This document shows, in pieces, positions 6,401 to 56,801 of a stretch of DNA of 64,000 bases. Location of the stretch: positions 1 through 64,000 of the forward strand of contig JBBPEB010000022.1 in NCBI GenBank assembly GCA_039096225.1, in the 5' to 3' direction. The notes beneath the pieces are model-generated. The model made no database searches and was not told the DNA's origin. It saw nothing but the letters and a program-made list of their open reading frames with translations. The position numbers and the translations under genes were made by a program. The DNA comes from Blastocystis sp. Blastoise. Its lineage: Eukaryota; Protista; Bigyra: Opalinata. Every line of letters starts with the position of its first letter. Positions within the stretch are counted from its first letter, which is position 1.

Positions 6401-9400
6401 TATCAACTACTATTATACAACCTACAGAAAAAAATACTTCTGTTTCTAATAATAATAATGATTCTATTAATACTTCTTCACACTCTTTACCTGTTGTTAC
6501 TACTATTCCAACTGATGTAAATATATCTAACAATAATAATTCTACAATCATTAATGATAATACAAATAATTCAAGAAATAACACTAATACTAATAATAAT
6601 GAAACAATAATACATAGAAATAATAGATCTATTAATTCCATTATGAATAGTTATTTAACTATTCCTGATTTAAGTCCTATTCTTCCTCCTTTAAGTATTC
6701 TAACAAATATTCCTCATATTAATTTAAATAATGATAATGAATCAGAAATTATAACAACAATACCTAATAGTAGTAGTAGTAGTAGTTCAAGTGATAGTAG
6801 TAGTAGTAGTAGTAGTAGTTTTTCTGATAATGATTCTGATTCTGATTATATTGATCCTTTTCCTAATATTAATAGTAATACTCAAAATAATGACGAAATA
6901 CCAGTTGTAAGAACTATTAGAAGACCTATAACAGATAATAGTATGTTTTTTATTATTTAAATATATTTATTTAATACTTTTTTATAGTTGAAGAAGATAT
7001 AATTATTCATCCTATTATTAATAGAGGAAGAAGAAGAGCTTTAGATATTTGTATGCTATTTATTTTTTATAATTCTTTATGAATAATTAAATAACAAATT
7101 ATTTTTATAGATAATCAACAAAGATTATTATATCCTGGATTACATAATTGTATTGCTTCTATTCAAAGAAGTATTTATATATATTTAATATTTATTTTAT
7201 ATTATTTTATATAGATTCTCATGGTGATTTCGTATTAAATGAAGCATTGAATACTTATAAAGCTAATTATTTAGGTGATTTTAATGTTCATTGTGAATAT
7301 TGTCATGCTAAACATTTTGAATTAGAGAAAGGAATGAATGATAAGTTTTATACTTGCTGTGGTAGTGGTAAAGTAGTTCTTCCTGAGCTTCCTGATCTTC
7401 CTAATACTATTCGTTCTTTATTACAAAGAGATAATCCAGATTCAAGAGAATTTATTAATAATATTATTCGATATAATAATTCTGTTGCTTTAGCTTCTTT
7501 AGCTGGAAATAATACTTCTGATGATGATTTAAGAAATTCTTCTGGACCTTTACTATTTAAATGTGGAGGTAATATATATCATACTTTTAAGAGTGCTTTA
7601 GATTTTGATGTGAATGATCCTACAAGACATCCTGTATTCAATCAATATTATATGATAGATGGAGATGAAGCTACTCATATGAGAAGTATGAATCGATATT
7701 TTTGTGATTTAAAACCAAATATTTTAGAGATATTAGATAGTACAATAAGAGAATATCATCCATTAGCTCAAATATATAATTCACTTCGAGAAAGAGTAGA
7801 TGAAGTATTAGAAGAGAATAGTCAAATGAATAGAAATAATATTAATTTATTAATAGAGTTTAAGAAACAAAGAAGAGAAGTACCTGATATAAGAAGATAT
7901 AATACTCCTCAAGTAGATGAAGTAGCAGTAATATATCAATATAGAGAAGGAGGAGTAATGCCAGAAAGAAGTTATTGTTGTTTTCCTAGAAGTGGTATGG
8001 AAATAGTAGCTACTAATAGTAATAATGAACAGAATCGTTATACTTCAGGTCAATATATAGTAATGAAGAATACTAATTCTTATATAGATTGTATGGTTTA
8101 TCCAGTTATGTTTCCAACTGGAAGACAAGGTTGGTATCCAGATTTATTATCATTGAATCGTTCTAATCAAATTACTATTACTATGTTAGAATATTATAAT
8201 TATATGCTTCAAATGAAAGATCCACCTTATGATAATTATTTATTAAAATATAAGAAATTAACTTTACAATATATTACTGATAATTATATTCGAGTAGAAC
8301 AAAATAGAATTAATTATATACGAAATAATCAAAATAAGTTAAGAGCTTCAACTTATCAGAATATAAATAATATGTTAGAAGAGAGAGGAGATCAAATAAA
8401 TGAGAATGATAGAAATATAGATAGAATAGGTAAAGCTATTATATTACCTTCTTCTTTTGTTGGTAGTCCAAGAAATTTGCAACAGAAATATATGGATGCT
8501 ATGAGTGTAGTTCGAGAATATGGTAAACCTGATTTATTTATAACATTTACTTGCAATCCAGATTGGTTAGAAATAAAGAATAATATTCCAGAAGGTTATA
8601 CTGTTAATGAATTTCCAGATTTAGTTTCAAGAGTGTTTCATTTAAAGTTGAAACAATTACTTTCTGATATAAAGGATAAGAATATATTTGGTACTGTAGA
8701 AGCTTTATTATATTCAGTGGAATTCCAAAAGAGAGGTTTACCACATTCTCATATATTAATTATTTTAGATACGAATTCTAAATATAGAACAGAAGATGAA
8801 GTAGATAGTATAATAAGTGCAGAGATTCCTGATAAAGAATCAACTCCTCTTCTTTATGAATTAGTTAAGAAACATATGATTCATGGTCCATGTGGTCCTG
8901 ATTATGATACGAATTGTGTTTGTATTGATAGATCAACAGGTAAATGTAGTAAGAGATTTCCAAAAGAATATATAGAGCAAACTAATTGTCATTTAAATTC
9001 TTATCCTTTATATCAAAGAAGAAATATTCCTGATAGAACTATTACTCTTATTCGTAGTCATAATACTTATACTATTGATAATCGTTGGGTAGTTCCTTAT
9101 AATCCTTATTTATTATTGAAATATCAAGCTCATATTAATGTAGAAGTCTGTTGTAATATTCAAAGTACAAAATATATATATAAGTATGCATTAAAAGGAA
9201 ATGATTCTGTGATAGCTCAATTAAGAAGAGTGAATGATAATGGAATAGTAGATGAAACTCAAGCTTATTTAGATTGTCGATATGTTTCTCCTCCTGAAGC
9301 TTCTTATCGTTTGAATTGTTTTGAAATTACTTATAATTCTGTTTCTATTAATAGATTACCTATTCATTTACCTGATGATCCATATATATTATTTCGAGAA

Positions 9401-11827
9401 GGACATGAAGTAGAAGCATTAAGGAATAGTTTAGAGAAAGGTACTAAATTAACAAAATACTTTGATTTAGAGAAAGAAGTTCAGAATCAAAGAAAGATAT
9501 ATACTTATTATTATATAGAGAAGAAGCATGGTATTCGTAATATGAATAATGTAGAAGAAGAAAGAGAATTGATTCAAGTTCGTTTAGAAGAGATAAATAG
9601 AATAAATAGTTATGAAGTAGATGATGATAATATATCCGAAGAATTATTGAAAATATTAGATGAGAAATATCCTATTTATGCTTATCATGAAATACCAAAA
9701 TATTATGTATGGAAATCGAATACAAATACTTGGAATAGACGTCAGAGAGATATAAAAGCTTTAGGAAGAATGTATTATGTGAATCCAAAAGATAAGGAAC
9801 GATATGCTTTGAGATTATTATTATTGAATACGAAAGGAGCTGATAGCTTTGATTCTTTGAAGATAGTAAAAGGATTGAATAGTAATGAACCTTATAGAAC
9901 CTTTAGTGAAGCAGCTATAGCAAGAGGATTATTGAATAATGAGAGAGAAGTATTTGATTCATTTTCAGAAGCTATTGTTTTTGCTACTCCATGTCAATTG
10001 AGACAATTATTTATTACTTATATTTCAGAATCATTATTAACAAATGTGAAAGAGTTTTGGATTCGATTTAAATCATTTCTTAGTGAGGATTATAAACATT
10101 CAATGCATAATAATGAAATAGATTATATAAATACTCCTTTAGCTCAAGATTTAGATTCATCAAGTGTTATAGAAGATGATACTAATAGTGTTCTTCAAGA
10201 TTATGAAATACGTACTTTACAAGATATAAAAGAGATGATGATAAGTATAGGAGTGAATTATAATGATTTAGGATTACCTCAAGTAGAAGAACAACATCAT
10301 TATAATGATTATAATTATAATCCTACATTAGAATTACAAGAAGCTAATAGAGTAATAGAATTATTAAATGAAGAACAAAGAAATGCATTTGATAGAGTAA
10401 TTCATTCAATAGAAAGTAGTAGAATAGAAGATAAGTTATGTTTCTTTATAGATGGTCCAGGTGGAAGTGGAAAGACTTTCTTATATAATAGTTTATTAAG
10501 TTATTTACGTGGACATAATAAGAATGTATTACCTGTAGCTTCAACAGGAATTGCTTCTACTTTATTACCAGGTGGTAGAACAGCTCATAAACAATTTGGT
10601 ATTCCTTTGAATGTTGATCCTGATTCTACTTCAAATATAGATTTAGCTAGAGATAGAAGAAAAGTAGAAGAAATAAGAATAGCTGATTTAATAATATGGG
10701 ATGAAGCTCCTATGATGAAAGGTGATTGTTTTATGGTAGTACATAGATTATTATGTGATATAATGAATACAGAATTAGATATTCCTTTTGGTGGTAAAAC
10801 AGTAGTATTAGGAGGAGATTTCAGACAATGTTTACCAGTTATAAGAAAAGGAACTCAAGCTCAGATTGTTAGTTCTTCTATAAAGTTTTGTTCCTTATGG
10901 AATTCTATCAAAAATAATGTCATTCATTTATCAAGAAATATGAGAGCTTTAGAAGGAGCAGATGATTTTAGACAATGGTTATTACAAGTAGGAGATGGTG
11001 TTCTTTCTAATAATTATACTATTAGTCATCATTTAGATATAGATTATATTCCTATTCCTCCTCAATGTATTGTGAATGATGATTTATGTGTTACTGTATT
11101 TGGACATCGAATCAATACTTCTCTTGATTCTGATATCAAACGATTAGCTTCTTCTGTTATATTAGCTTCTACTAATGATTGTGTTGGTACTTTAAATGAT
11201 TTCATTGTTGATAATCTTCTTTCTGGAACTACTACTCCTTATATCTCTTCTGATTCTATTCTTGATTCTGAAACAGATGATCCAGAATCAAATTATCCTA
11301 TCGAGTTTATCAATTCTCAAACACCTTCTGGAATGCCTCCTCATATATTAAATTTAAAAATAGGTTGTATCATTATGCTTTTAAGAAATCTTAATCCTTC
11401 TAAAGGATTATGTAATGGTACTAGACTTATAGTAACTCGATTAGGATCAAATAATATTACTGCTACTATTTTAAATCCTCCTCCTTCTCTTACTATTGAT
11501 GAACAAACTGTTATTATTCCAAGAATCATCTGTAATTCAAATCCTGAAGATCTTCCTATTATTATATCCAGAAGACAATTTCCTATTCGTTTAGCCTTTG
11601 CCATGACTATCAACAAATCTCAAGGACAAACATTTGAAAGAGTTGGTGTTTACTTAGATCGTCCTGTCTTCTCTCATGGTCAACTCTATGTTGCTTTCAG
11701 TCGTGCTCGATCTTTCAACGCTCTTTTTATTAAGGTAGTTGATAGTGTCTCTCAAGGTAAGATGATTAGTAGTAGTAATGAAATATTTACTAAGAACGTG
11801 GTCTTCAGGTCTACTCTAAATAATTAA
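3427..11827 (+). CDS. Helitron RepHel (HUH Rep + PIF1 helicase); predicted 15 exons, 2,085 aa
   Basis: Exons 3427-3502, 3543-3614, 3664-3726, 3777-3848, 3903-3974, 4045-4092, 4156-4227, 4298-4348, 4411-4482, 4549-4608, 4647-4664, 6095-6940, 6988-7050, 7111-7170, 7215-11827 join into one open frame. Motifs: CEYC..CC Zn-knuckle-like, PDLFITFTCNP, VEFQKRGLPHSH, YIYKY, GPGGSGKT, IWDEAPM, GDFRQCLP, FAMTINKSQGQT, HGQLYVAFSR. The last exon is certain; the upstream joining is inferred. Confidence 0.9.
5320..5985. repeat. ~60-bp AT-rich minisatellite (~11 units) in RepHel intron 11
   Basis: Unit TATTATATTAATAAAGGTTATA(TA)CTTTATATTAATAAATATATCATASTATATCTATG repeated in tandem. Confidence 0.9.
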
Positions 11828-26804: not shown

Positions 26805-26837
26805 GTGAATAAAATATTAAAAAATAAAAAAATAACA

Positions 26838-27476: not shown

Positions 27477-27515
<39 letters not shown>

Positions 27516-31060: not shown

Positions 31061-31128
31061 TCTTATATCAGGAATTGAACCTGATTACAATCAATAAATG
31101 ATTGCTACTCTCCATATAGAGTATAAGA
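31061..31128 (-). ncRNA. tRNA-like cloverleaf (3'-type, copy C)
   Basis: Same fold as 15193-15260, with a GCAATC/GATTGT G-U pair. Confidence 0.7.
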
Positions 31129-32292
31129 AGTGTTATTAAAATAATATATATAATATATAATATATAATATATAATAAGTAACATATTATAGATAATATTT
31201 AATAAATAATATATATTATATAATATATAATATATAATATATAATAGATAAAAAGGAAAGAAAGTAAATAAAAACCAAACAGTTATTATTCATTGCAGCC
31301 GCGGTCCGGTGCCGTTAGGCCCCGGACCTGCGGCGTGACCCTAGTTTTTTATAAATTAAAATACTAAATTAAATATATATGTATATTAATATAAAATTCG
31401 TTTTAACAAAAGTGGATATGTGTATTTAAAAACGTTAAAATCTTTTAGAGTTTTTTAAAAATAACTTATTTGTTTTATAAACTATATTTTATGTATAATA
31501 GGTAAAGTTTCCAAAGTATTTAAATCTATTTAGTTATGAAATGGAATGTAATTTTTGGTTTATATTTAGTTTTTCGTTTCATTTAATGAAATGATTTTGA
31601 TAACACTATAAAAATTGAATTAAACTTGAATTAATTAATTTTAAATAATGAAAAGATAATTTCTCTATAAATATTCTCTTTTACTTAAAACGAATAGATT
31701 CTATTAATGATAAATATTAAAATAAGACTCTAATTTTTTTGTTTAGTATATAAAGTAATAAATATCTTTTAATTATTAAGAGTACTTTTGTATTAATAAT
31801 TCAAACTAAAATAAGTATAATAAAAGAAAAATTATAATATTTATCAAATAATATCAAGATATGATTACTATTTATATAATTAAACATTTATTAATTGAGA
31901 AAAGCTGTATAATAAAATTTCTAAAATATTTATATAATAGTATATATAAAAGGAAAGGATAAAATATAAAAAAACAAATAGATATCAAAATTATAATATT
32001 TTAAAAATAAAACAAAACAATATATGAAAAGAATATATAATGTTTTTTTTAGACAAGAGAATAAGCTATTTCTCACAATAATAATTATATAGACTAATTC
32101 AAATAAAACATAAATATTTAAAGGTAGGGTATAAGTGATAATAATATGTTTTAAAAGAAAAAGTATTTTATAATCATATTGATATTATTTAAAATACTAA
32201 ATATTTATAAAACTAAATGAATTGATAAAATACATAGAAAGTTATAAATGAAATAACAAAGAAAAGTGAATTAATATTGAAAACTAAAAACT

Positions 32293-32519: not shown

Positions 32520-33558
32520 AGATCAAAAATAAAACACAAGAGTTAATTAATTATCATTGATAAACAATAAATATATATAATCAATAATAAAAATGGCTAA
32601 AAAGAATATTAAAAAAAAAAAGGAAATAATACTCAAGAACATATAGAATGTTAAGTAAGAATTATCAATATGTATGAATTAAATTATTTAAAATACTAAA
32701 TTGAAAATTAAGATTAGAAGATAACAATTAAAAGCAATTGAAATAATATTTTATAGAATATGAAATAGTTTTAATCCTAAAAAAAATAAAAACAGAAATG
32801 AATAACAAAAACATAAGAATAAATATTCATTTTTTAAAATTCACTGTAAGATATAACAATTGAGAGATAATAATTATCTAAACTCAAGCGTAGGCTGGCG
32901 TAGCCAGTCGTGAAACGCTTGTTTATCTAAATTCTCTGCATTATCAAGTATTTATTGTAAATATATAAAGAATTTGAAATTAAATATTTTTAAAGAAAAA
33001 TTGAGAAGAAAACTAGAAAAATAGTGTTTTTTGGCAAATAGTTTAAAAGAGTCTTTGAGTTATATCTTATAATATTGCATTCACAGAGTAACTAATCTTG
33101 TCTTCTTACGTGATATTCGTACTTAAGTGTTTCAAAATAAGTAGTTACAGAGTTTTGTTTAATTGCCATTTTCGGTATTTTATTTTTTGATTTTAAAGTT
33201 GGTTTTCTAATAAATAAAATTAAAATGACTATCTTAATAAAAAAAAGTTTATATTATACTGAAATACATATACAAAATGTTGGACAATTGTGAGCCAAAT
33301 CTTTAGAAACTTAATGTAAACTTACAAGAATCTAAACTTTGGTAGCTGACATCCTTATGATTAAAAATCATTATTATCATTACTATATACTAGGGTCACG
33401 CCGCAGGTCCGGGGCCTAACGGCACCGGACCGCGGCTGCAAAGAATAATAACAGTTTGGCTTTTATTTTCTTTTTTTCATTATTATCTATTATATATAAT
33501 ATATAATATATATTATATACTATATATTATATATTATATATATTATTTTATTAACACT

Positions 33559-33626
33559 TCTTATACTCTATATGGAGAGTAATAATCATTTGTTGATTAT
33601 AATCAGGTTCAATTCCTGATATAATT
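33559..33626 (+). ncRNA. tRNA-like cloverleaf (3'-type, copy D)
   Basis: ATAATC/GATTAT compensatory variant of ACAATC/GATTGT; T-arm intact. Confidence 0.65.
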
Positions 33627-34917
33627 ATTAAATTGATCATTTGAATAGTATCTGAAAAACTAAAAACAATACTTAAAAAAATGAGAAACCCTTTTTGAAT
33701 CATTATATTTGTTATTTATTATTTTAAAAATATATATTGTATTTATAAATAGTTAAGTTACTATTTTAATTATTATGGAGTTTCTAAAGCTAATAAATTT
33801 AGAAATGGCTCACAATGTTAAGTATTGAAAGTCATTATTATGTAAAATCATTTTAAATAGATTATAATAAGGTAGTTTACACTTTCTTTAATCATTTCAT
33901 AAAACCAAAACCCATTTAACACAACAAAGTCAACATTCATTTTCACTTTAACGACTTAAACACATAGTTTTAGAATTAATATTAATAAAGTCACTTTAAA
34001 TAGCATTTCTATACATAAAGGTGTCAACAATATCGGTTTTAGAGAGACTTCACCATTTTGATATCCAGTGTATCAAAATAGTTTTAAACATAACTTTCAC
34101 ACAATATAGATCTCATTGTGTTATATATTAATTAAAATTTGATGTCTTGAATCTCTGATATAGAGACCCTTTTTTATACATTTTGAAAAGTTGACACACT
34201 TAAAGTTAATTTAAAAAGCTAACATTTACACACTATACTCAGCATAACTCTATAAACACGTTAATAACGATTTTAACACTCTTTATAAGCCTTTTACATT
34301 TGGTCATACACTTTGTCAAGTGTATTTCTGTCCCTCGTTTTGATATAGTTTAAAACATAAATTATAGTTTGATAAATAAAATGTTTCGTATTGAATCGCA
34401 TCCTCCTAAAACTTATTATTATATTTTTTTTAAATAAAACCCTTTAAACTTGTTTTTAAAAGTCAGTACTTTCATATTATAACAAAAACACAGTTTTAAA
34501 CAAACAGACAAACTCTTTTAAATTTTTAGACAACTCAAACACATTTTTAATTCACTTGTGAAAAATAAAATTATTTTAATTTTTTACATGTTGTAGAGTG
34601 CATGCTATTTTATATTAAACAATTTTTAGAATTTTTAATCTCTTAGTTGAAGAGCCTATTTTTTAACATTTATTAATTTTTACAATTTTACATATAATAA
34701 ACTATATAAAAAAAGTATGTGGAGGATTCAAAACTTAATAATAAGTCAATTATTGATATGATTACATTGGTGAGTCTATATAGAATTAGATGAGATCAAT
34801 AAATGTTTTAATTAAATTAAATACAAAGATTAAAATGATCCATACTATTAATATTAACTAATTTAACAATTGTTTTAATAGTCAACAATTAAAATTAAAA
34901 AACAAAGCAAAAAAACA

Positions 34918-34948
<31 letters not shown>

Positions 34949-35093
34949 CAAAGTATTATATTAAATAAGTAAATATAGATTAGCTAAAGCTAAACAAAGT
35001 AAATAAATAGATATATAAAGAAAGAAAATATAAATAAAAAATAATAAGCAAAAGAAAAAGAAAATTAAAAAAATAAAAACATTCTAAGTATAC

Positions 35094-36352
35094 CCATCAT
35101 ATTAGAAAAGCCTAAAAAATAAAAGACATATATATATATATATATATAAGAGATATAATAATAAATATATGATATATATATATACCTTTAAGTATTAGAG
35201 ACCTATCCACACTATCACCTATATAGATAAAGATATATATATAAAAGATACATTATAATAAATATATGTAATATATATATATACCTTTAGATATATTTCT
35301 ATTTATAAGAATAAACATTATCATCATGATGATAGTATTCCAAATTAGATGGTACACCTATATATAATAAATGATTGAGATAATAATAATAATATACATG
35401 AATAAACAATAAATATATATATATATATACCTTCTAAAGAAGGAACAGAAGAATAACCATGATATCATAACTGAGTTGAACAACCTATATATGAACAAAT
35501 TAGTATTAATAAAATAAAAAGAAATTAAAAAATAAAGAAATATGAATATACCTGTATCATTACCTATAATAGAAGACTCGATCAGAATAGAAGGACCTAT
35601 ATATAAATAATAAATAAAAATAAACTAAATTAAATTTAAAAAATAGACATACCTTAATTATTAACACCTTCAGCAACCACACACACAACAATAAAAGAAC
35701 CTATAAAGAAACAGTAATAGACAAATAATAAATAAAAAAATAATAATAATAAATGAATGACAATATATATATATACCTTTAATACCATAGGAACAGTCTA
35801 CCTGATCACCAACAACATCAGCAGCAGTATTGAAAACATCAGAAGAACCTAAATATATATAAAAGTAAAAAAGAAAAATAAATGAATGACAACATACCTT
35901 CAACACTACACAGATATCTTCATCTACACCACTGTTTACATGCACAACAACTGAAGAACCTATATATACAAAGAAATAACAAAAGAAAAATATAATAAAA
36001 TAAATGATTGGCAACATACCTTCAATACCATAAGAGGAACCTATATCTACGTAAACAGAACCATTAGCATCATTTAAAGCAACAGAAGAACCTATAAATA
36101 AAGAAAAATTAAAGAAATAAAAACAAATCATTGACAACATACCTTCACAGTTAGCATAACAGGCAACACCACAGCCTCCGTATGATACAAATAACATAGA
36201 AGAACCTTTAAGACCATCAGAGCAAGTAATACCAAGACCAAGAACATACACAACTGGATCCTATTGAGTAGAAGAACCTGAAAGTTTTTGAGAAATGTAT
36301 ATTTTTCCATCTACACACTTCGATCTTGACAGCATCATGCCTTCTGAGGCAT
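35094..36352 (-). pseudogene. Micro-exon array (copy D); introns 1 and 2 precisely absent
   Basis: Exon-exon fusions at 36278/36277 and 36206/36205; intron 3 (36142-36092) retained. Confidence 0.8.
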
Positions 36353-37882
36353 CTTAGATAATATTTTAATTATAAAAAATAAGTGTTTTCTCTTAATATA
36401 AAAATTGTGTTTATATTTCTACTTTTAAAGAAAAGGGTCTTTTATAAAAATATGCTTCTTAAAATCTAATAGAAATCAAAAATACCCTTGAGTTTTCATT
36501 GATTTATTTACAAAAGTAATAATTGGGTCATTTTCTATTAAAAACATTTATGGTACCCAAAAAACATAGTTTTTTACATTTTTTAAATATTTGATTATAT
36601 TATTTGATTCTGTATATTTTATTTATTTATTTGATATTGTTTTATATTGCATTATATCTATCTATCTATATAGTTATTTATTTATTCAAAATAATACACT
36701 TTTTTATAGGATTCTCTTGTATTTGTCTTGGTTGTTGTAGTAAAGAGTTCTTGAAGTGGTCACGGCTATGTGAATTGGATTACTTTGTGTCAGGTATATA
36801 ATATATATTTATTTTTATAGTATTTGTTTTTTAATTCTCTCATTACTTTGTTTTATTTTATATTTTTGTTATCTATATTATTTATTTTGTCTTTTTATAT
36901 CATTTATTAAATAGTTTTTAATTATTTTTATTCTATAGGAAAGAAAATGTTGTTGATGTGTTGTCGTCTTCGTTTTTTCATGTCATTCTTCTTTAGTCTG
37001 TGGTTTCAGATTAATCTATTAGGTATATATTTATATTTTATTTATTATTTTCATTTTTATTATTTATTATTTATGTTTTTTATTTATTTATTTATGTTTT
37101 TTATTTATTTATTTATTATATTTATTTATTTATTTATTATATTTATTTATTATATTTATTATATTTATTTATTATATTTATTTATTTATTATATTTATTT
37201 ATTTATTTATTTATTATATTTATTTATTTATTATTTATTTATTATTTATTTATTTTTATATGTTTTCTATTATATATAGGTTTTATAGTCTTCTTGTTCT
37301 TTTTTCTTCTTTCTTCCTTCTTTCTTCTTCATTTTACTTCTTCCTTCTTCCTTATCCTTCCTACTTCTTTCTTCCTTCTTTCTTCCTTCTTTCTTCTTCC
37401 GTCTTTCTTATCCTTCCTACTTCTTTCTTCCTTCCTTCCTCATCCGTCATTCTTCCTTCCTTATTCTTCCTTCTTCCTCATCCTACTTACTTCTTCCTTC
37501 TTTCTCATCCTTCTTTCTCATCCTTCTTCCGTCTTCCTTATTCTTCCTACTTCCTTCTTCCTCATCTGGCATTCTTCCTACTTCTTCCTACTTCTTCCTA
37601 CTTCTTCCTGCTTCATCATTCATCATTTCCTTCTTCCTGCTTCCTTCTTTCTTCTTTCCCATCCTTGATTCTTCCTTCTTCCTTCTTCCTCATCCTTCAT
37701 CCTTGTTTTTTCCTTCTTCTTCCTCATTCTTCCTTCTTCCTCATCATTCCTACTTTTACATCCTTCCTCATTCTTCCTTCTTCCTCATCCTTCCTCATCC
37801 TTCCTACTTCATTCTTCCTCATTCTTCATTCTTTCTTCTTTCTTCCTACTTCCTACTTCTTTCTTCCTACTTCCTTCATTCC

Positions 37883-37923
<41 letters not shown>

Positions 37924-37948
37924 ATTATTATTATTATTTATAAACTCC

Positions 37949-38015
37949 CTTTATGCTCTAGAAGGAGAGAAGCAATCATTATAGATTGTTTTCAGGTTCA
38001 ATTCCTGACATGAAG
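37949..38015 (+). ncRNA. tRNA-like cloverleaf (5'-type, copy D)
   Basis: CTTTATG...TCAGGTTCAATTCCTGA CATGAAG. Confidence 0.7.
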
Positions 38016-41000
38016 TGTTATTTTTCTCCTGTTTTTTAATATTTTTTTTTACATATTATTATTATATATATATATTCTCTTTTTTAAATTCATTTTAATC
38101 CATTTTACTTTATACTTTTCAATTTTGACATTGCATACATATATCTAACTTTTTATAGTTTTTTTTAGACTTCCTCTTCTCAACAACAGTCAGAATGAGA
38201 ACAAAATCCATTTTAACTCGAGCAACTAAGTCATCTCAAAACTGTTTGAATCAATCAATATAGACGTGTATGTCATAATTTATCATTTTAAACTGATTTT
38301 CAACTCTCAAAAGTAAACAAACCAAACACACATGTTGACTTTTAAACGTTAAACTCAGTATTAAAAGGTTATTTTTATAGAGTAGACATAAAACATTGAT
38401 TTAAACAAAAATGAATGGAAACAATCAACTCTTGATACAACTTTGCCATTTGACAAAACACTCATCCACAATATTTTCCAAAGTTCTTTTAGTAAAGTGT
38501 TTATATATACATGTTATGTATAAAATGAAAGTCAACTTCTTGAATCTCTTTGTTTAAGACACGCTTTAAAACATTTTGACAAATTGACAACCTTTAACTG
38601 GTTATTTAAAGTTGATATTTTAAGAGTAAACTTGATTTAGACCCTTAAACACAACTGGCATCACCATAACACTTTTAAAGACACTTTACCATTTGGTCAT
38701 ACACTTTGATCAAAACATTTTCGTCCCTTCTTTTAATATAATATAGATCATACACTCTAGTTTAATGAATAAACACTCAAATATTGAATCTCGTCCTCTA
38801 AGTTACTCATTTTTACATTTTTTTAAATTAAGACCCTTAGAGTTGATTTTTTGACTCAATTTTTCTACAGTGCACGAAATTCACGATTTTGCTCAAACTG
38901 AAGTAAAAATAAATTTTAAATAATAGTCACAACCCTTCACACATCCACTCTCTAAAAATTATTTTCTTTGTACTTTTGATATGTTGTAGAGCTACTACAG
39001 CTGTACACTAATTAATATCTCTAAATTTTTTATTCATAGTTTAAGACTATGTTTTACACATTCTTTTGAATTTGACAACCTTAAACTATTTATTTAAAGC
39101 TCTTATTCATAGAATTGACTTGACTTAACATTTGAAACACATATAGACACCCTTTTACTTTTTAAGACACATTTTGTCATTTGGTGATACACTTTGACCA
39201 TCATAATTTTGACTTTCCTTTTAACATAGTATAGAGTATTATCTCTAGTTTACTAAACAAAAGTCATTATATTGAATCTTATCCTCTAAGACCACTTAAT
39301 TCACATTTTTCAGAATTGTGACACTCAAACTCATTATTTTAAGACTCTGTTTTAACTATAGTAGTTTGAGGACCTATTGATTACAATACTGTAATATTAG
39401 TCGATTATAAGAAGATCAAAGAAAATATCGATCACTCAAAAATCGTCCTCAGGAGCTCAAAATTGGTACACCTAGGTTTTTTGACCTCCTGAATCAGAAT
39501 ATGATGTCAAATTAAGAATCTAAATTTGACCGTTAAGGCCTCACGTGTTCAATATGAAAAAGTATTAAAAAATAGATAAATATAAAGAATAAACACGGAT
39601 AACGTATATTGTGGGATTGAGAAAAAATCAAGTTTACCCCATGTTTATTTTCCAATTGTCTGGTCAACAATTTTTATCGGGACGATCCCAAAGAGCCAAT
39701 CAAAAACGACTCAAAAATCATGTTTTCTGTTCTTTTATTAATAACTTTTTAATTATAAACAATATCGCTTAACCAAATATATGGTGCACAACTACATGTT
39801 ATATCCTATTGAACTGTGTTTCAACCAAAAGTTAACTCCCCGTAAGTTTAGAGGAGTTGTGGGTACAAACTATAGTATACCTTAACCAATCAAATGCATT
39901 TTCCAAAAACTGACCAATGGGAATTTTTTTGCCTATTCTCATATATATAGTAATGATATGAGAATAGGCAAAAAAATTCCCATTGGTCAGTTTTTGGAGA
40001 ATGCATTTGATTGGCTACTATATACTATAGTTTGTCGCCGCAACTCCTCTAAACTTACGGGAAGTTAACTTTTGGTTGAAACACAGTTCAATAGGATATA
40101 ACGTGTAGTTGTGCACCGTATATTTGGTTAAGCGATATTATTTATAATTAAAAAGATATTAATAAAAGAACAGAAAACATGATTTTTGAGTCGTTTTTGA
40201 TTGGCTCTTTGGGGTGACCCCGATAAAAATTGTTGACCAGACAATTGGAAAATAAACATGGGGTAAACTTGATTTTTTCTCAATCCCACAATATACGTTA
40301 TCCGTGTTTATTCTTTATATTTATCTATTTTTTAATACTTTTTCATATTGAACACGTGAGGCCTTAACGGTCAAATTTAGATTGTCAATTTGACATCATA
40401 TTCTGATTCAGGAGGTCAGAAAACCTAGGTGTAGCGATTTTGAGCTCCTGAAGACGATTTTTGAGTGATCGATATTTTCTTCGATCTTCTTATAATGGAC
40501 TAATATTACAGCATTGTAATCAATAGGTCATCAAACTACTATAGTTAAAACAGAGTCTTAAAATAATGAGTTTAAGTATGACAATTTTGAAAAATGTGAA
40601 TTAAGTGGTCTTAGAGGACAAGATTCAATACAATGACTTTTATTTAGTAAACTTGAGATATTACTCTATTCTATGTTAAAAGGAGAGTCAAAATTATGAA
40701 GATCAAAGTGTATGACCAAATGACAAAATGTGTCTTAAATAGTAAAAGGGTTTCTATATGTGTTTAGAATCATGTATTAAGTATATTCTATGAATAAGAG
40801 CTTTAAATAAATAGTTTAAGGTTGTCAAATTCAAAAGAATGTATAAAACATAGTCTTAAACTATGAATAAAAAATTTAGAGATATTAATTAGTGTACAGC
40901 TGTAGTAGCTCTACAACATATCAAAAGTACAAAGAAAATAATTTTTAGAGAGTGGATGTGTGAAGGGTTGTGACTATTATTTAAAATTTATTTTTACTTC

Positions 41001-41879
41001 AGTTTGAGCAAAATCGTGAATTTCGTGCACTGTAGAAAAATTAACTTCAAAAATCAACTCTAAGGGTCTTAATTTTCAAAGATGTAAAAATGAGTGACTT
41101 AGAGGACGAGATTCAAAATTCCGCCTCACTTTCATATAACTAGACCACACAGTCTATATTATGTCAAAAGAAGGGACAAAAATATTTTGATCAAAGTGTA
41201 TGACCAAATGGTAAAGTGTCTTTAAAAGTGTTATGGTGATGACAGTTGTGTTTACATGTCTGAATCAAGTCTATTCTTTAAATATTAGCTTTAAATTGCA
41301 AGTTAAAGGTTGTCAATTTGTCAAACTGTTTTAAAGACTATCTTAAACAAAGAGATTCAAGAAGTTGACTTTCATTTTATACATAATATGTCTATATAAA
41401 CACTTTACTAAAAGAACTTTGGAAAATATTGTGGATGAGTGTTTTGTCAAATGGTAAAGTTGTATCAAGAGTGAATTGTTTCCATTCCTTTTTGTTTAAA
41501 TCAATGTTTTATGTCCACTCTATAAAAACTATCTTTTAATACTGAGTTTAACGTTTTAAAGTCAACATGTGTGTTTGGTTTGCTTACTTTTGAGAGTTGA
41601 AAATCAGTTTAAATTGATAAATTATGTCATAGACGTCTATATTAATTGATTCAAGCAGTTTTGAGATGACTTAGTTGTTTGAGTTAAAATGGATTTGTTC
41701 TCATTGTGACTGTTGTTGAGAAGAGGAAGTCTAAAAAAACTATAAACAGTTAGATATATGTATATAATGTCAAAATTTAAAAGGTATAATCTAAAAGAGA
41801 TAAAAATAAGTTTAAAAAAAGAGAAAATATATATATATATATAATATGTAAAAAATATTAAAGAAAAAGAAAAATAAGA

Positions 41880-41946
41880 CTTCATGTCAGGAATTGAACC
41901 TGAAAACAATCTATAATGATTGTTTCTCTCCTTCTGGAGCATAAAG
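41880..41946 (-). ncRNA. tRNA-like cloverleaf (5'-type, copy E)
   Basis: Same fold as 1922-1988. Confidence 0.7.
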
Positions 41947-42490
41947 GGAGTTTATAAATAATAATAATAATCAAATATATATATTTATATATATATAATA
42001 AGAAGGAAATGAAGTGGAAGGATGAGGAAGAAGGAAGTAGGAAGGATTAGGAAGAAGAAGTAAGAATAAGGAAGGATGAGGAAGAAGGATGAGAAAGAAG
42101 GAAGTAAGAAGAAGTAAGAATAAGGAAGGATGAGGAAGAAGGAAGAATCCAGAATGAAGAAGAAGTAAGTAAGAAGAATCAAAGATGAGGAAGAAGGAAG
42201 AAGGAAGTAGGAAGTAGGAAGCATGAATGAAGAATGAAATAGGAAGAAGGAAGCATGAATGGAGAAGGAAATAGGAAGAAGGAAGAAGGAATGAAGAAGG
42301 AAATAGGAAGAAGGAAGAAGGAAGAAGAAGGAAGGAAGAAGAAGTAAGTAGGAAAGATGAGGAAGAAGGAAGAAGTAAGAAGGAAGAAGAACGAAGATAG
42401 AAAGAAGAAAAAAAAACTAAGAAGAATATTAAACCTATATACAATAAATAAACATAATAAATAAATAAATAAATAAATAAATAATAAACA

Positions 42491-42540
<50 letters not shown>

Positions 42541-43328
42541 TAAATAAATAAACATATAAAAAAAATGAATAAATAAATAATAAATAAATAAATAAATAAT
42601 AAAAAAAAAGTAAACAATAAATAATAAAAATAATAAATAAAATATAAATATATACCTTTAAAATAACCTTGAACGACAGATTAAAGAAGGAAAATATTTA
42701 GCAACGAAGACCACAACACATCCATTAAAGTTTCTTTCCTATAGAATAAAAATTATTAATAATATATAGAATAAATTATATGTAAAGACTAAATAAATAA
42801 TATTGATAATAAAAATAATAAATAATAAAAACGAATTAACAAAAAGAAAAACAGATCTTAAGAAATAAATAATATATTTATATACCTGATCATAAATAAA
42901 CCATTTTACACAGCCAAGACCACTTCAAGAACACTTCAACACCACAACCAAGGAAAATACAAAAGAATCCTATAGAAAAGTGTATTATTTTAAATAAATA
43001 AATATATACATACAAATATATATAAAAATAATAACTAAACAATATCAAATAAATAAATAAAACATACTCAGTCAATCAATATAATTAAATATTTAAAAAA
43101 AGAGTAAAGAACTATGTTTTTTGGGTACCCAAAATGATTTTAAATAAGAATGACCCAATTATTACTTTAGTAACAAAATCAATAAAAAATTAAGGTTTTT
43201 TTTTATTTCTATTATGTTTAAAGAAGCATATTTTGAAAATAGACCCTATTATATTTATTAATACAAATGAAATAGGATTCTTAAATACATATTCAAATAC
43301 TTAATTGTATATTATATTATTAAATAAG

Positions 43329-44464
43329 ATGTCTGAAAACAACAAAATGTCATCCAGGAGGAGGCCTGGAAATAAAAAATAATTTATATTTCAAAGAAAA
43401 TCAGGTTCTTCTACTCAATAAAATCCAGTTGTGTATGCTCTTGGTCTTGGTGGTACTTGCTATGATGGTCTTTAAGGTTCTTCTATGCTATTTGAATTAT
43501 GCAGTGGTGGTGGTGTTGCCTGTTATGCTAACTGTGAAGGTTCTTCTGTTATTGTAAGTGATTCCAATAGTGATATCGGTGTTGATGTAGGTTCTTCTTG
43601 CTTTATAGATGGTATGTTACCAATCATTTATTTTTTTTTTATATTTTATTATTATTTTTTTATTATTTCTATATATATATAGGTTCTTCAGTTGTTGTAC
43701 ATGTTAACAGTGATGTTGATAATAGATGTCTGTGTGGTGTTGAAGGTATGTTGTCATTCATTTATTTCTTTTTTTACTTTTATATATATAGATTTGTTTT
43801 ATTGATGTAAATGTTGCTATGGATGTTGTTGGTGATCAGGTAGACTGCTCATATGATATTAAAGGTATATATATATTGTCATTCATTTATTATTATTTTT
43901 TTTTTATTTATTATTTGTCTATTACTGTTTCTTTATAGGTTATTCTACTGTTGTGGTTGTAGTTGCTGAACGTATTAATGATGAAGGTATGTCTACTTTT
44001 TAAATTTAATTTAGTTTATTATTATTTTTATCTTATATAGGTCGTTCTTTTCTTATGGAGTCTTGGATTAATAGTAATAATGATACAGGTATATTCTTAT
44101 TTCTTCCTTTCTTTTTTTTTTGATTTATTAATTATCTTTTCATTATATATAGGTTCTTCAAGTCAGTTAAGATATCATGGTGATTCCTCTGTTCCTTCTT
44201 TAGAAGGTATATATATATATTTATTGTTTATATATATTTTATCATTTATTATATTATATATAGGTGTCTTTTCTAATAGGGGATCTTATCACCCTAATGT
44301 TAGCTTTCATTTTAATAATAAAAATGTATCTAAAGGTATATATATATATATATAACAAATATTTATAATATTTCTTTTAATATATATATGTTAGATATAT
44401 TTATTATACTATCTCTTATTATATATATATATCTTTTATTTATATAGGTTCTCTTAGTTTTATT
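43329..44464 (+). pseudogene. Micro-exon array (copy E); introns 1-3 precisely absent
   Basis: Fusions at 43404/43405, 43476/43477, 43539/43540 relative to copy C. Confidence 0.85.
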
Positions 44465-45954
44465 GTTATGTTTAGATTTTTTTTTTTTTAGTTCTTTTTC
44501 TTTTTCTTTTGTTTATTATTATTATTATTTTTCACATTTAATAGCTTTCTATTATCTGCTTTCTTTATATTATTTATTTATTTATGCTGTTGTTATCGTT
44601 TTAGCTATTCTATATTTAAATGTTTTCTTTTGCTATTTTTGTTTTGTTCTTTTTTTTTTTTTTTATTTAAATTGTGTCGACTATTAAGATAATTCTTGAA
44701 ATACTTAGTATGTTAAATAGTGTCAAGTTTTTAAATATTTGAATTAAATTTTAAAACATTTATTGTCACTTTTAACACTGTATAGTATTACTGATTTAAA
44801 ACTGTCAATAATTGAGATATTTAAGTTTTGAGTTTCTCTGTTTACTAGCATTTATATTTACATAATTTTGTGAACGTATTAACTCATAAAAGTAACTTTA
44901 AGGTTGTAAAATAAAAAATATTATCTTAAAATAGGAGATTCGAAATTCTAATAGAAGTTTAATATATAATAAGCTAAATTCTACAACATATTAAAAAATA
45001 AGAGAATTTCATTTTTGAAAAGTGAATTAACAATGTGTTTGAGTTGTCTAGAAATTTTAAAGAGTTAGTATATTCTTTTAAAATTGTGTTTTCATTAGAC
45101 TATGAAAATTTTGACTTTTAAAAACAAGTTTAAAGGGATTAATATTTTTAAATGTAGAAATGAATTATCCAAAGGATGAGATTCAATATAAAATATTTTA
45201 TTTATCAAACTATGAATTATATTCTAAATTATATCAAAAGAAAGGACAAAAATACACTTGACAAAGTGTATGACCAAATGTAAAATGTTTATAAAGAGTG
45301 TCAAAATGGTGACTCTTATGTTGATAGAGTTATGATGAGTATAGTGTTATAATATTAGCTTTTAAAATTAATTATAAGTGTGTCAACCTTTCAAAATGTG
45401 TTAAAAATGATCTTGAAGTCAGAGATTCAAGACATTAAACTTGAATTAATAAATAAAATAATGAGATCTATACTATGTGGAAGTTATGTCTAAAACTATT
45501 TTGATACACTTGATATCGAAATGGTAAAGTCTCTCTAAAAGTAATATTGTTGACACTTTTGTGTTTAGAAATGCTATTTAGATTGAATTTATTAATATTA
45601 ATTCAAAAACTTTGTGTTTAAGTCGTTAAAGTCAAAATGAATGTTGACTTTGTTGTGTTAGATTTGTTTTATTTTTATGAAATGATTAAAATAAGTTTAT
45701 GCTATTTTATTATAATCTATTTAAAATGATTTTACAACATAAAAATATTTTTCAATACTTAACATTATGACCCATTTCTAAATTTATTACCTTTAGAAAC
45801 TCCATAATAATTAAAACAGTAATTTAACTATTTATAAATACAAAATATATTTTTAAAATAATAAATAACAAATATAATGATTCAAAAAGGATTTCTTATT
45901 TTCTTCAAGTATTGTTTTTAGTTTTTCAGATACTATTCAAATAATCTATTTAGT

Positions 45955-46022
45955 TCTTATATCAGGAATTGAACCTGATTACAATCAATAAATGATTGCT
46001 ACTCTCCATATAGAGTATAAGA
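45955..46022 (-). ncRNA. tRNA-like cloverleaf (3'-type, copy E)
   Basis: Same sequence as 31061-31128. Confidence 0.7.
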
Positions 46023-46966
46023 AGTGTTATTAAAATAATATATATAATATATAATATATAATATATAATAAGTAACATATTATAGATAATATTTAATAAA
46101 TAATATATATTATATAATATATAATATATAATATATAATAGATAAAAAGGAAAGAAAGTAAATAAAAACCAAACAGTTATTATTCATTGCAGCCGCGGTC
46201 CGGTGCCGTTAGGCCCCGGACCTGCGGCGTGACCCTAGTATATTAATATAAGCTTAGTCAATAACAAAATAATAAACAAAACAAGATTTTTTTTCTCAGT
46301 CATTTTTTTGGAAAAACCGGGTTTTTTCCAAAAAACCGGGTTTTCCCCATGAGTGTAAAATAACATTGATATAGTCATCATCTTTGTCATAAAACCCATT
46401 ACAATTGTTTTGAGCTACCCACGACACATAATCAGTAACATAATTGGACGGAACTCGTATAAAAGATGCTTTCGTTAAAGGGTTTATTACTCTGGTGTCT
46501 TTTGATCGTTTATAAAAGGTTTATTGACTAAATAAAACGTTCTGACAGTAATCATATTGTGAATCTGTTTGATAAACTTATTAAAATTCATACTTTGAAC
46601 TCTGTCAACTATTGCATTATAAATCTCGTCATAAGACTCCATAACACTCGTCAACAACGTCAAATATAGAATAATTAATATAAACAAAGAATTGTGTATT
46701 TTTTTCCCCTTAATTATTTTCTCTATAATTTACAACAATAAAAACACTGCCATTTTGTCAAGTTTATCGCGGTAATAATAGTACTCAAAAATAGACTGTC
46801 CTGAGTCAAGTTTTACAATTTAGAGCGTCCTGAGTCAATTATCTCTTCTGTTCTTACATATTCCCATGAATATGGCAAATTGTAGTAATTCCTTCTTTTA
46901 TTCTAATTGAAGAACTACAACTCGTAGCTAGTATATTTTGTGTTAGTTTTAAGAGTTTTGTGAGGA

Positions 46967-53027: not shown

Positions 53028-53490
53028 TTATGAGTTTTTGACAGAGAAATAATTAAATATGGTGTTTTGTTTTGAAGGTGTTTGCTGATCATTTGTATTG
53101 ATTGAAGAAGATGTATTATTAACAATAGTAGAGTTATTTGATTCGTTATTAGTTTCTTTTCTTCGTTTTTTATTGGATATATTAGAATCTTTAATAGATC
53201 GTTTTTTCTTATTACTTGTATTTGAGTTTATAGAAGAAGGAGAAGAAGAAGAATAAGCTTGTTTAGTAGGTGTGACTAATAACATACTTACATCTTGATC
53301 TTCATCACTATCTTCTTGAATAATTTGTGTACCCGTAGTAGTTATATCATTATTATTCTTTATTATAAGATTTGTATGAATTCTATTTATTGTTGACAAA
53401 GTAGTTGAATCGTTACTTTGCTCTAAATCTGAATCTAAAATAGTAATTACTGGTGAGTTAGAATGAATAATCTCTTCTTCTTTAGAAGGT

Positions 53491-53533
<43 letters not shown>

Positions 53534-53801
53534 CTGAGATATTATTATTATCTGAGATATTATTATTATTAGATTGTATGGGAATAATTTCTTTGGTTTC
53601 TAAAACGACAGATGATTGTATACCTTTTTCTATAGGATGATTTTGACTATGTTCATTTACTAATTTATTAATTAATTCAATATCATTATGTTCTTCATTC
53701 ATCATTGTTTCTTCATCATTATCTGTTGAATCATGGAATGATGTTGATAATGTAGAATGAATTATACTATTTGATATAGTATTTTGAGAAGACAAAGTCT
53801 C

Positions 53802-53895
<94 letters not shown>

Positions 53896-54093
53896 ATAGG
53901 TAATCTATCTAATGAAGGCATATGAAGAGTTGAATTACTATTACTTGATTCTTTAATAATTTCTCTGCTTGCTTCATCTAATACTATAGTTTCTTGTTTC
54001 ATTTCTTGAGATAAACTTAATCTTTGTTCTTTATTTATTATATTCTTCTTTGTATCTCTAATAAACTGTCTCATTGGACTACCTTCTTCTTCA

Positions 54094-54151
<58 letters not shown>

Positions 54152-54780
54152 TAAAAGTAAATATTTCTTTATTATCTTTCTTAGGAGTATGTAATAAATC
54201 ATTTGAGTCCTGTATATCTATATCTATATCCATATCTAAATTTAATTTATCTAATTCATGTTTTTGTTTTTTATTTATATTAAATAATGAATGATTATTA
54301 TTTATATAAGGTAACGATTGAGGATGAAGAGGACAACTTGGTCCCATACATATATTATTATTATTAATATTATTATTATTATTATTATTATTAGTTATAG
54401 AAGAAATAGTAGGAATTGAATTATTTGTAGAATTTGAAAGCATATTATTCGTAGAAGATAGTGTTTTATTTGTATCTAATTGATTTCTTATACTTTGTAT
54501 AGATGAAAAACTAAAAGAAGAAATAGAATTACTATTATTATTCTCTTTAATAGGTAATAATCCACGATAACTATTACTAAATTCATTAAAGGAATGTTGA
54601 GATAATTCGATTATTTCATGTTGAGTTAAAGTCTGTGGAACAATATGCTTCTTCTTCTTAGAATTTGAATTATTATTATTATTACTAGTTGAACTAGTAG
54701 TAGAAGAAGATGAAATTGTACTTGAATTTGATATCTTTTGAGGGGAAACAGGTGACGAAGAAGAGAATGTAAATGAAGAT

Positions 54781-54822
<42 letters not shown>

Positions 54823-54913
54823 GTATTATTAGTATTAGTATTATTAGTATTATTATCAACAATAAAATTAAATCCTGATGAATAACAAGAAGAAGATACA
54901 GGCATTGAGAAAC

Positions 54914-54980
<67 letters not shown>

Positions 54981-56766
54981 TGGAGTAGATAAAGTTAATG
55001 GATGAGGTAAGAGTGTAGATTTATTATTAATATTATTATGAGGAGTATTGATTTTAGGAGAAGGAAGAGCAGGAGACATAGCTATAGGTATATAGGGTAT
55101 TTTATAATCATATATAAAAGAATCATCAATTTGATAATTATCTAAAATTTCTTTTTTAATTTTCCATACTTTTGCTTTAGAAAGTTGTGTTTTTTCTTTT
55201 CTATCAACTATTTCTCGGAATTTTCGTTCAATCTATATTATTAACGAGGTTCATAGATAGAATAAATATAATAATAAAAGAATAATAGTAAAAATATTAA
55301 AAATAAAAGACAAACTAAAATTAATAACAAATAAATTACATAAATAATAAAAACTAAAACCTTAGAAAAAAAAAGAAACATAAATAAAACTAAGCTATTA
55401 ATAATAAAAATATATGTATATATATACTTGTATTTTCTTTAAAACAGGATATTTATCAAATACTGTTTCTACAACATTAGGAATAGAAATAGAATGATTA
55501 TGACTAATATAAATAATATATTTTATCATTTCATCATTAATTTCTATTCTTTGTTTAGATGGAGAAGTAATGTCACTTCTATTTATATGGTTATCATTAA
55601 TAGTATTAATAGAATCAAGACCATGTTTCTGAATAACATCTTTCTTTTGTTTAATATCATTATAATTTAACATATGTAAACAACAAAAATATAAATCAGA
55701 TTCTTTTTTAATTGTTTTAATAGTATTTACAGTAATAGGAAGTATAGATTTATTATTATTATTATTTATATTTTCATTATTATTATTATTATTATTATTT
55801 TCTATAGTCATACAATTAGATAGATCAATAGACATAGAAGAAGAAGAAGACAGAGTATTTATAGTATCTTCTTGATATATATTTGTTAAAGGACCAATAC
55901 AAATAGGTTTTTTAGTACGTAATGTAGCATCTTCACCATTTCTTCTTCCTGATAATTGATTTAATATATATGTACTTTTCTCTTCTGCAGACATTTGAAG
56001 ACCTTCTGGTATTTCAACATCATCTTCTACCATAAATCCATCATTATAATCAAATTTATTAGGTTCTTGTTCATTTTCTTGATCATTCTCATCATCATCA
56101 TCTTCTTCATTAATATCATCATTAATAATATCACTATCTACATGACTATCTTCATCTTCATCTTCTGACCATTCTATACCACTATCAAAACTATAATCTA
56201 ATTCATTCTCTTGCTTAAAAGGAGTTCTAGGAGTTATTATTAATGAATGTTTATGCCTTCTACCAAAGAAGGCAGGACGATTATCCTCATAAAATTGTGT
56301 TAATTGATATCTATAATATTGGCGAAGATGATAATATATTTCATTTGAAGTATACTGTTTTATAGATTTATGTAAAGATATATATGGCTTTATAGAAGAA
56401 ACAGAAGGAGAAGGAGAACAAGGAGATATTGAAGACGTATTTAAAATTTCGATATCATTTGAATTCTCATTTTGATAGCTAGTATTATTATTATCACTAT
56501 TATTATTATTATCATTAGATGATGGAAATAGAAGGGATTTATGAGTATTTGAATTCGATTTTAATCCATTATATATAGTATTATATTCTTGTTTAAATTG
56601 TTTATATAATAATTGATTCTCTTTTTGGATATTTAATTTCATTTTACGAAATAATTGTATATCATCCATTATTAAATTAGGTATAGAATCATTATTATTT
56701 AAAGAATGCTTATATTCTACTTTCTTTCTCTCCTCTTCTTCTAAATAATAATAATAATAAAGAGTA

Positions 56767-56801
<35 letters not shown>

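Follow-up and report, generated by a model that had tools for sequence, protein, structure and literature searches.

How can one copy of a DNA transposon lose three consecutive introns to the base and keep the seven that follow? The question is raised by a resident non-autonomous Helitron of ~6.3 kb, copy E, which lies in the 64,000-nt stretch of Blastocystis sp. Blastoise contig JBBPEB010000022.1 that was analyzed as a whole and is called the window hereafter. The mechanism of intron loss is a long-standing question, usually approached through rare events that lie millions of years apart and no longer reveal it. The family to which copy E belongs comprises ~50 near-identical copies that record more than 12 fresh, exact losses.

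The Helitron Family in the Window

The window is AT-rich (~22% GC) and eukaryotic, uses the standard genetic code, and belongs to an assembly of 33.34 Mb in 34 contigs. By self-comparison, it holds five copies (A to E) of one repeat (Table 1). The element that carries the loss is a true Helitron, as originally proposed, judging from its ends, its hairpin, its insertion sites between A and T, and a RepHel partner. Thus, copies B, C, D and E share a 5′ TC terminus (TCATTACTAT...) and a 3′ CTRR terminus (...GTGACCCTAG) that ends in ...CCCTAG, and a GC-rich hairpin (GCCGCGGTCCGG...CCGGACCTGCGGC) is found 10 nt before the CTAG in all four of them. Copies C, B and E have an A on one side and a T on the other. 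The younger copy D is nested in the 5′ end of copy E, between an A and a T (33389|33390, 39956|39957) and with no target-site duplication. Its insertion between nucleotides 13 (A) and 14 (T) of copy E explains why the first 13 nt of the latter are found apart from the main body, and its nesting also accounts for the head-to-head inverted repeat formed by the two copies.

The autonomous relative is copy A, which shares the 5′ end of the family and its arm of micro-exons (~3427-4700). It is ~75% identical to the non-autonomous copies, to which it is an outgroup. Its RepHel frame runs uninterrupted over 1559 aa and matches the Helitron_like_N (E = 2e-56) and PIF1 (E = 2e-64) profiles. Crude exon chaining with a local script showed that the arm of copy A is open and stop-free, with GSS...GLE modules, once the homologous introns are removed; a full gene model joining the arm to RepHel was not recovered by this chaining. 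No tRNA (ARAGORN) and no known RNA family (Rfam) was found in the 39900-42500 region, and searches of protein collections with the exon 3-4 stretch of copy E, which is contiguous in the DNA, returned neither protein homologues nor encoding contigs.

Table 1. Positions in the window of the repeat copies and of the features of their arms.
Feature	Position	Strand	Basis
Copy A	1 to ~5000, continuing into RepHel gene	+	self-BLAST
RepHel ORF of the autonomous relative, copy A (Helitron_like_N + PIF1 helicase)	7148..11827	+	profile search
Copy B	21547-14963	-	self-BLAST
Copy B introns 1-3	18040-18003 (38 nt), 17930-17880 (51 nt), 17816-17766 (51 nt)	-	alignment
Copy C	24851-31344	+	self-BLAST
Copy C introns 1-3	28367-28404 (38 nt), 28477-28529 (53 nt), 28593-28643 (51 nt)	+	alignment
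Copy C introns 4-7	28716-28786, 28850-28896, 28970-29043, 29092-29144	+	alignment
Copy C introns 8-10	29193-29256, 29311-29367, 29440-29551	+	alignment
Displaced first 13 nt of copy E (TCATTACTATATA), abutting the 3′ CTAG end of copy D	33377..33389	+	termini
Copy D, younger Helitron nested in the 5′ end of copy E	33390..39956	-	self-BLAST, termini
Copy E, non-autonomous Helitron, main body	39957..46238	+	self-BLAST; termini, motif positions
Homopurine (G/A) tract, GC skew +0.92, ~0.9-1.3 kb upstream of exon 1	42000..42400	+	skew
Copy E exon 1 (ATG 43329, in-frame TAA 43380)	43329..43404	+	alignment
Copy E exon 2 (in-frame TAA 43419 and 43473)	43405..43476	+	alignment
Copy E exon 3	43477..43539	+	alignment
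Copy E exon 4, followed by retained intron 4	43540..43611	+	alignment
Copy E seven retained introns, whole stretch	43612..44447	+	alignment
Copy E intron 4 (retained)	43612-43682	+	
Copy E intron 5 (retained)	43746-43791	+	
Copy E intron 6 (retained)	43865-43938	+	
Copy E intron 7 (retained)	43987-44040	+	
Copy E intron 8 (retained)	44089-44152	+	
Copy E intron 9 (retained)	44207-44263	+	
Copy E intron 10 (retained)	44336-44447	+	
Copy E 3′ terminus: GC-rich hairpin, then ...GTGACCCTAG, then host T	46190..46238	+	motif positions

Exact Loss of Introns 1 to 3 in Copy E

In its complete form, for which copy C was taken as the reference, the arm consists of 11 short exons, most of which start with GGTTCTTC (Gly-Ser-Ser), and of ten short introns, which are all of the GT...AG type and in phase 1. 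The introns are 38 to 112 nt long and have the same borders, AG|GT...AG|GT, except that intron 4 of copies C and E reads TG|GT. Intron 1 is the shortest (38 nt), and introns 7 (53-56 nt) and 9 (50-57 nt) match introns 2 and 3 in size. The homologous introns 1 to 3 of copy A measure ~40, 49, and 50 nt.

Copies A, B, and C retain introns 1 to 3, and copy E lacks all three of them. In the alignment of copies E, C, and A, its exons are fused at 43404|43405 (exons 1-2), 43476|43477 (exons 2-3), and 43539|43540 (exons 3-4), each junction reads ...AG|GTTCTTC, and what is missing to the base is the GT-AG introns that measure 38, 53, and 51 nt in copy C, with which exons 2 to 4 are identical. Introns 4 to 10 could all be located. 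Both parts of the original prediction, the exact absence of three consecutive introns and the retention of those downstream, are thus confirmed as real features of the assembled sequence. Among the ~50 family candidates in the genome, the triple-fused state of copy E is found at a single locus.

A transcript of this arm would contain stops, as had also been claimed, since three in-frame TAA codons are present in exons 1 and 2. They are true stops, given that the standard code yields an uninterrupted frame of 1559 aa for the adjacent RepHel; a ciliate code with TAA read as Gln was considered and ruled out by this frame and by the host frames, which the standard code leaves open as well. At the positions of the second and third TAA, copy A reads CAG and GAA. 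The arm in copy E is a decayed, stop-containing relic of the N-terminal micro-exon arm of the transposase.

Siblings of Copy E and the Order of Its Losses

Relative to copy C, copy E is 86-92% identical upstream of exon 1 and ~99% identical downstream. It might be supposed that this switch near intron 1 marks the edge of a conversion tract. This reading was rejected after a whole-genome search, which found three other copies that share the upstream region of copy E at 99-100% identity. One of them, C6 (L008/L041), has this 5′ region at 100% identity together with all ten introns, of which intron 1 measures 38 nt, as in copies B and C. The shift in identity is a subfamily trait, and copy C, with which copy E had originally been compared, was the wrong partner. 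The other two siblings both lack intron 1: C10 (L017/L042), without a single substitution relative to C6 in 4246 nt, and C14 (L016/L043), which is a mosaic. Copy E differs from C10 by five substitutions in 4144 nt, plus introns 2 and 3, in keeping with the claim that the loss was recent. The bases 41936 G and 43768 C are private to copy E.

This series, from no loss (C6) to the loss of intron 1 (C10 and C14) and of introns 1 to 3 (copy E), indicates that the state of copy E probably came about through two or more successive losses, with the removal of intron 1 first, a state shared with C10 and C14, and that of introns 2 and 3 later. A loss of three adjacent introns at once is less likely, as the true siblings lack either no intron or intron 1 alone. 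The spacing between the arm-bearing copy and a neighboring A-type fragment is 6396 nt for C6 and 6393 nt for C10, which suggests that the two are segmental duplicates and that intron 1 was lost in place. Copy D, in contrast, is a transposed copy. The tie to rolling-circle copying made in the original prediction is hypothetical.

Copy E might also have been converted by an older intron-less copy, e.g., one of the group of copy D, in which introns 1 to 5 are missing, with no new loss being involved. Copies of the family do recombine, as seen from the mosaic C14 and from the four-gamete pattern formed by introns 1 and 5 across the family, and the intron-poor copy D adjoins copy E. However, exons 2 to 4 do not differ between copy E, its intron-bearing siblings, and copy C, while exons of the D group are only ~82-88% identical to them. 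A tract copied from copy D would have brought these differences along. No intron-less donor with exons 1 to 4 identical to those of copy E was found among the ~50 family candidates, and we regard conversion as very improbable.

Intron Losses across the Family

Of the ~50 arm copies in the genome, 41 were aligned for a census of introns (Table 2). Intron 1 is missing from 13 copies, intron 2 from eight, intron 3 from six, intron 4 from three, and intron 5 from eight, and introns 6 to 10 are present in all. The junctions are exact (...AG|GTTCTTC) at every loss, in 17 copies; in copy D, which lacks introns 1 and 2, they lie at 36278|36277 and 36206|36205. L035 lacks intron 1 and, in addition, a whole exon-intron module; an apparent loss of intron 5 in L035 and in copy A was excluded from the counts, because in both cases it reflects the absence of such a module rather than a precise loss of the intron.

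Table 2. Introns missing from copies of the family.
Copies	Introns lost
C10, C14, L027, L028	1
L018	2
L029-31	5
D	1-2
E, L036	1-3
L032	1, 2, 5
L033	1, 3, 5
L037-39	1-5

On a tree built without the columns of introns 1 to 5, ~13 to 16 exact losses can be placed, all of them in introns 1 to 5. Were all ten introns lost with equal likelihood, such a confinement would have a probability of ~1e-4 or less. The number of independent events might be lower than that of the losses placed, since gene conversion may spread an intron-less allele and make copies look younger than their intron polymorphisms. The census by position bears out the original view that loss is 5′-sided and not 3′-sided.

As judged from the tree, the change is a loss and not a gain of introns, because the outgroup copy A and the basal clades carry homologous introns. 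The converse history, in which the intron-less state is ancestral and introner-like sequences with AGGT target duplications inserted elsewhere, would suit introns that are present in some copies and absent from others and that have 4-nt direct repeats on either side, as well as the resemblance between introns at different positions. It is nevertheless hardly credible, in that the introns of all basal clades, and those of the 75%-identical copy A, are homologous and lie at corresponding positions, and intron-less copies are tips inside intron-bearing clades.

Copies with 99.9-100% identity over 4 kb often differ by the loss of introns and by nothing else. The group of copy D, with five loci on four contigs and 0-4 substitutions per 4 kb between copies, forms a nested series in which introns 1 and 2 (D), 1 to 3 (L036), or 1 to 5 (L037-39) are missing. 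Copy D and L038 have no substitution between them in 3896 nt, yet differ by three introns. Where nearest neighbors differ by several introns, these are adjacent (introns 2 and 3, 4 and 5, or 3 to 5). Single losses also exist, of intron 2 in L018 and of intron 5 in L029-31, and in L033 the missing introns 1, 3, and 5 are not adjacent to one another. Such single and non-adjacent losses are part of the outcome that had been named as refuting the original prediction.

Between pairs of copies at most 0.15% divergent over ~4 kb, indels of at least 8 nt amount to 12 whole introns and three changes of microsatellite units; no other indel of that size, imprecise or within an intron, was found in these pairs. 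Exact deletions of introns are thus in excess of chance. Selection on the reading frame cannot have hidden imprecise deletions, given that the arm has in-frame stops. In the 14 autonomous A-type copies (at least 93% identity), the lengths of the matching segments (HSPs), the only measure taken of them, reveal no intron-sized change in the arm.

An origin of these patterns in assembly or polishing is improbable. Spliced RNA reads or cDNA incorporated into the consensus, and spread randomly over near-identical copies, could yield copies that differ by introns alone, and the triple-fused state of copy E is indeed present at one locus only. On the other hand, the published pipeline for what is presumed to be the source strain, Rus-B, relied on genomic DNA reads, with Flye run on genomic ligation nanopore data followed by racon (nanopore), PolyPolish (Illumina DNA), and POLCA, and RNA-seq served for annotation (PMC12129017). 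Moreover, poly(A) RNA-seq coverage would be expected to affect the 3′ introns as well. One and the same intron-less state recurs at the three loci L037-39, each on a different contig, and copy D, which lacks introns 1 and 2, is inserted within another copy and has termini of its own.

Spliced RNA as a Possible Template

The best explanation for these losses appears to be that spliced RNA of the element was used as a template for DNA, a reading to which we assign a probability of roughly 0.55. It is suggested by the combination of boundaries defined by splice sites, multiple losses of adjacent introns, and runs nested from exon 1. Two routes from the spliced RNA of the Helitron to DNA may be envisaged. 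A cDNA might be made by a reverse transcriptase encoded in the genome and then recombine into a copy, or the RNA might directly template the repair of a break. Sources of reverse transcriptase, which the original prediction had asked for, are at hand, with 20 RVT_1 matches above the cut-off in a profile search of the genome and open frames of up to 2787 aa; no rve integrase was found in the genome.

In either case, we infer that priming would occur at a DNA end or internally and that the polymerase would proceed toward the 5′ end of the RNA, so that the tracts would be anchored at exon 1. Tracts with different starts that all reach exon 1 would generate a nested series, with intron 1, introns 1 and 2, 1 to 3, or 1 to 5 being erased. 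The composition of the element offers a lead. GC skew reaches +0.92 in the 400-nt homopurine tract upstream of exon 1, which may be a fragile site or form an R-loop, is +0.27 to +0.40 over 43400-44000 (exons 2 to 7), and is near zero beyond. R-loops or breaks near the 5′ part are plausible on account of the tract and of the positive skew.

Several observations weigh against an RNA template. The introns are short and have the full 4-nt AGGT at both ends, the shortest of them, intron 1, is the most often lost, single (L018, L029-31) and non-adjacent (L033) losses occur, the 3′ bias of the classical cDNA model is not seen, and no length change of the size of an intron is seen among the 14 autonomous A-type copies. 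The first three of these favor a purely DNA-level process, in which end joining on the flanking AGGT repeats removes each intron singly by microhomology, with no RNA being involved. Such a process must be taken seriously as an alternative, given that all ten introns are short and bordered by AG|GT and that small size and microhomology are known to raise the rates of intron loss in worms and flies (PMC3698931). The stepwise history suggested by the siblings of copy E is compatible with it as well.

Nevertheless, microhomology alone fits poorly, as the original prediction held, and we consider it unlikely to account for the whole pattern. All ten introns have the same borders, and only the first five are lost; in particular, introns 7 and 9, with the size and borders of introns 2 and 3, have gone from no copy, compared with eight and six copies for the latter two. 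In addition, the 12 whole-intron deletions between near-identical copies are accompanied by no imprecise deletion of at least 8 nt, in a stop-containing arm whose frame is unprotected. Lastly, multi-intron differences concern adjacent introns, and successive patterns extend one another from the 5′ end. The preferred reading, that of a spliced RNA template, can be extended to a general model, in which transcribed Helitron copies are repeatedly rewritten from their own spliced RNA by DNA-primed tracts that run to the RNA 5′ end. We put this extension forward as tentative, and on balance doubtful.

Implications

As the ten introns have the same borders and similar sizes, the comparison between them is internally controlled. 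The positional rule that emerges, with losses restricted to the 5′ half and often nested, is predicted neither by the 3′-primed cDNA model nor by simple microhomology deletion. The family would constitute a natural assay for RNA-templated change of DNA in a protist, provided that the copies are borne out by genomic reads.

Should the general model hold, a DNA transposon that encodes no reverse transcriptase would nonetheless be edited through RNA. The flow of information from RNA to DNA would then represent a frequent mutational process in this organism, faster in these elements than point substitution and readable as a 5′-to-3′ gradient of intron erasure. It might contribute to the streamlining of introns in the genus Blastocystis, and it is relevant to the question of why intron size varies so widely among Blastocystis lineages.

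Comparison with Known Systems

The mRNA-mediated loss of introns by reverse transcription, i.e., the model of Fink and of Derr and Strathern that has been tested in Dictyostelium, shares with the present case the exact removal of introns at splice junctions, the presence of reverse transcriptase genes in the genome, and possibly the joint loss of neighboring introns (PMC4683709). In its classical form, priming at the poly(A) tail entails a 3′ bias (PMC4683709). Here, the polarity is reversed, with 5′ introns only being lost. The rate is also very high relative to that of substitutions, and the target is a non-coding relic in a DNA transposon.

RNA-templated repair of double-strand breaks has been described in human cells, where it involves Pol zeta and yields deletions of whole introns and of sequential introns (PMC12065846). 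The precise whole-intron deletions, sometimes sequential, and the dispensability of a retrotransposon are features in common with the Helitron family. As the broken end primes synthesis toward the 5′ end of the RNA, this mechanism would fit a series anchored at the 5′ side (PMC12065846). The events reported there are experimental or found rarely in tumors (PMC12065846), whereas those in the Helitron family are germline-like, recurrent and fixed, and are read from sequence alone.

With the microhomology-mediated losses of van Schendel and Tijsterman (2013; PMC3698931), the family shares short introns, matching AG|GT borders and many single losses. It departs from them in the restriction of the losses to the 5′ half despite equal microhomology, in the loss of adjacent introns, and in the lack of imprecise deletions.

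The CACTA transposases of plants provide another case in which a gene of a DNA transposon has lost introns, and its authors favor a route by reverse transcription (PMC4158355). That case concerns deep clades of coding transposases (PMC4158355), in contrast to the near-identical copies of a single Helitron family studied here, which are non-autonomous, contain stops, and display a positional gradient.

Finally, processed pseudogenes, or retrocopies, resemble copy E in that the information of a spliced RNA ends up in DNA. Unlike them, however, copy E lacks a poly(A) tail and retains seven of its introns, 3.3 kb of the element upstream of the arm, and the two Helitron termini. It represents a partial rewrite in place rather than a retrocopy. 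The phenomenon as a whole belongs to a known kind, that of precise intron loss, most likely RNA-templated, and it is set apart by its unusual polarity and rate.

Intron and Module Losses in the Arm

Exact losses affect the arm, a series of 11 short exons and 10 short GT-AG introns found in each copy of the Helitron family, in the non-autonomous copy D, from which introns 1 and 2 are precisely absent (junctions 36278/36277 and 36206/36205; window 36195-36284, minus strand). When copy D was compared with a copy on contig C31 that is devoid of introns 1-5, no substitutions were found over 3896 nt, the two being otherwise identical. In the family locus L035 and in the autonomous copy A, it is not an intron alone that is missing but a whole module, composed of exon 5 and one flanking intron. 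This absence is consistent with unequal recombination between similar neighboring introns, and module loss is a process distinct from the precise intron losses.

The same arm codon is a stop in all non-autonomous subfamilies (window 43419-43421 and equivalent positions in other copies). Types C and E carry TAA there, types D and L024-L033 carry TAG, and copy A reads CAG. As this stop is shared, the arm has long been untranslatable in the non-autonomous lineage. Despite it, the splice-site consensus has been kept at all 10 introns of the non-autonomous arm.

Repeats, Nested Insertions, and Genomic Distribution

Upstream of the arm, every copy harbors a 400-nt tract of nearly pure G/A, with a GC skew of +0.92 and built of short imperfect repeats, whose number differs among copies by changes of 13-33-nt units. 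In copy A, the arm is also separated from the RepHel frame by a tandem array of at least eight units of ~62 nt that are 70-89% alike (window 5221-6004).

Copy D is nested in the 5' end of copy E, where it separates nt 13 (A) precisely from nt 14 (T) (window 33377-33404 and 39947-39961), an insertion that generates a head-to-head inverted repeat of >2 kb. Similarly, a TCATTACTAT 5'-end fragment (14952-14961) adjoins the 3' end of copy B (14963-14977, minus strand). Together, these two arrangements suggest that the family prefers to insert into the 5' tip of fellow members.

Many family copies are grouped in the first ≤150 kb of contigs, often several per cluster and in both orientations, which suggests subtelomeric accumulation and segmental duplication. 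Host-like open reading frames at window 53028-56900 (minus strand) contain very long poly-Asn and poly-Ser runs, which are typical of the extremely AT-rich genome of this Blastocystis.

Locations of module-less copies, G/A tracts, family clusters, and reverse-transcriptase genes
Feature	Location	Remark
Module-less copy L035	C19:949800-953600	
Module-less copy A	window 3777-3974	
G/A tract, E	42000-42400	
G/A tract, C	26900-27350	
G/A tract, A	2000-2800	
G/A tract, further	18700-19450, 37000-37900	minus strand
Family clusters	C6:1780-70839; C10:2104-21549; C11:1-46250; C1:121350-149289; C20:736-11898; C7:7373-9827	
Reverse transcriptase	C10:55024/63615; C13:624268/632859; C29:412516/421012	tandem pairs
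Reverse transcriptase	C14:664277/672868/681360	tandem triplet

Reverse-Transcriptase Genes

The genome assembly contains reverse-transcriptase genes with open frames of ~2600 aa, arranged as tandem pairs or triplets with a spacing of ~8.6 kb. As the whole genome yielded no rve integrase domain, these tandem genes appear to differ from ordinary LTR elements.
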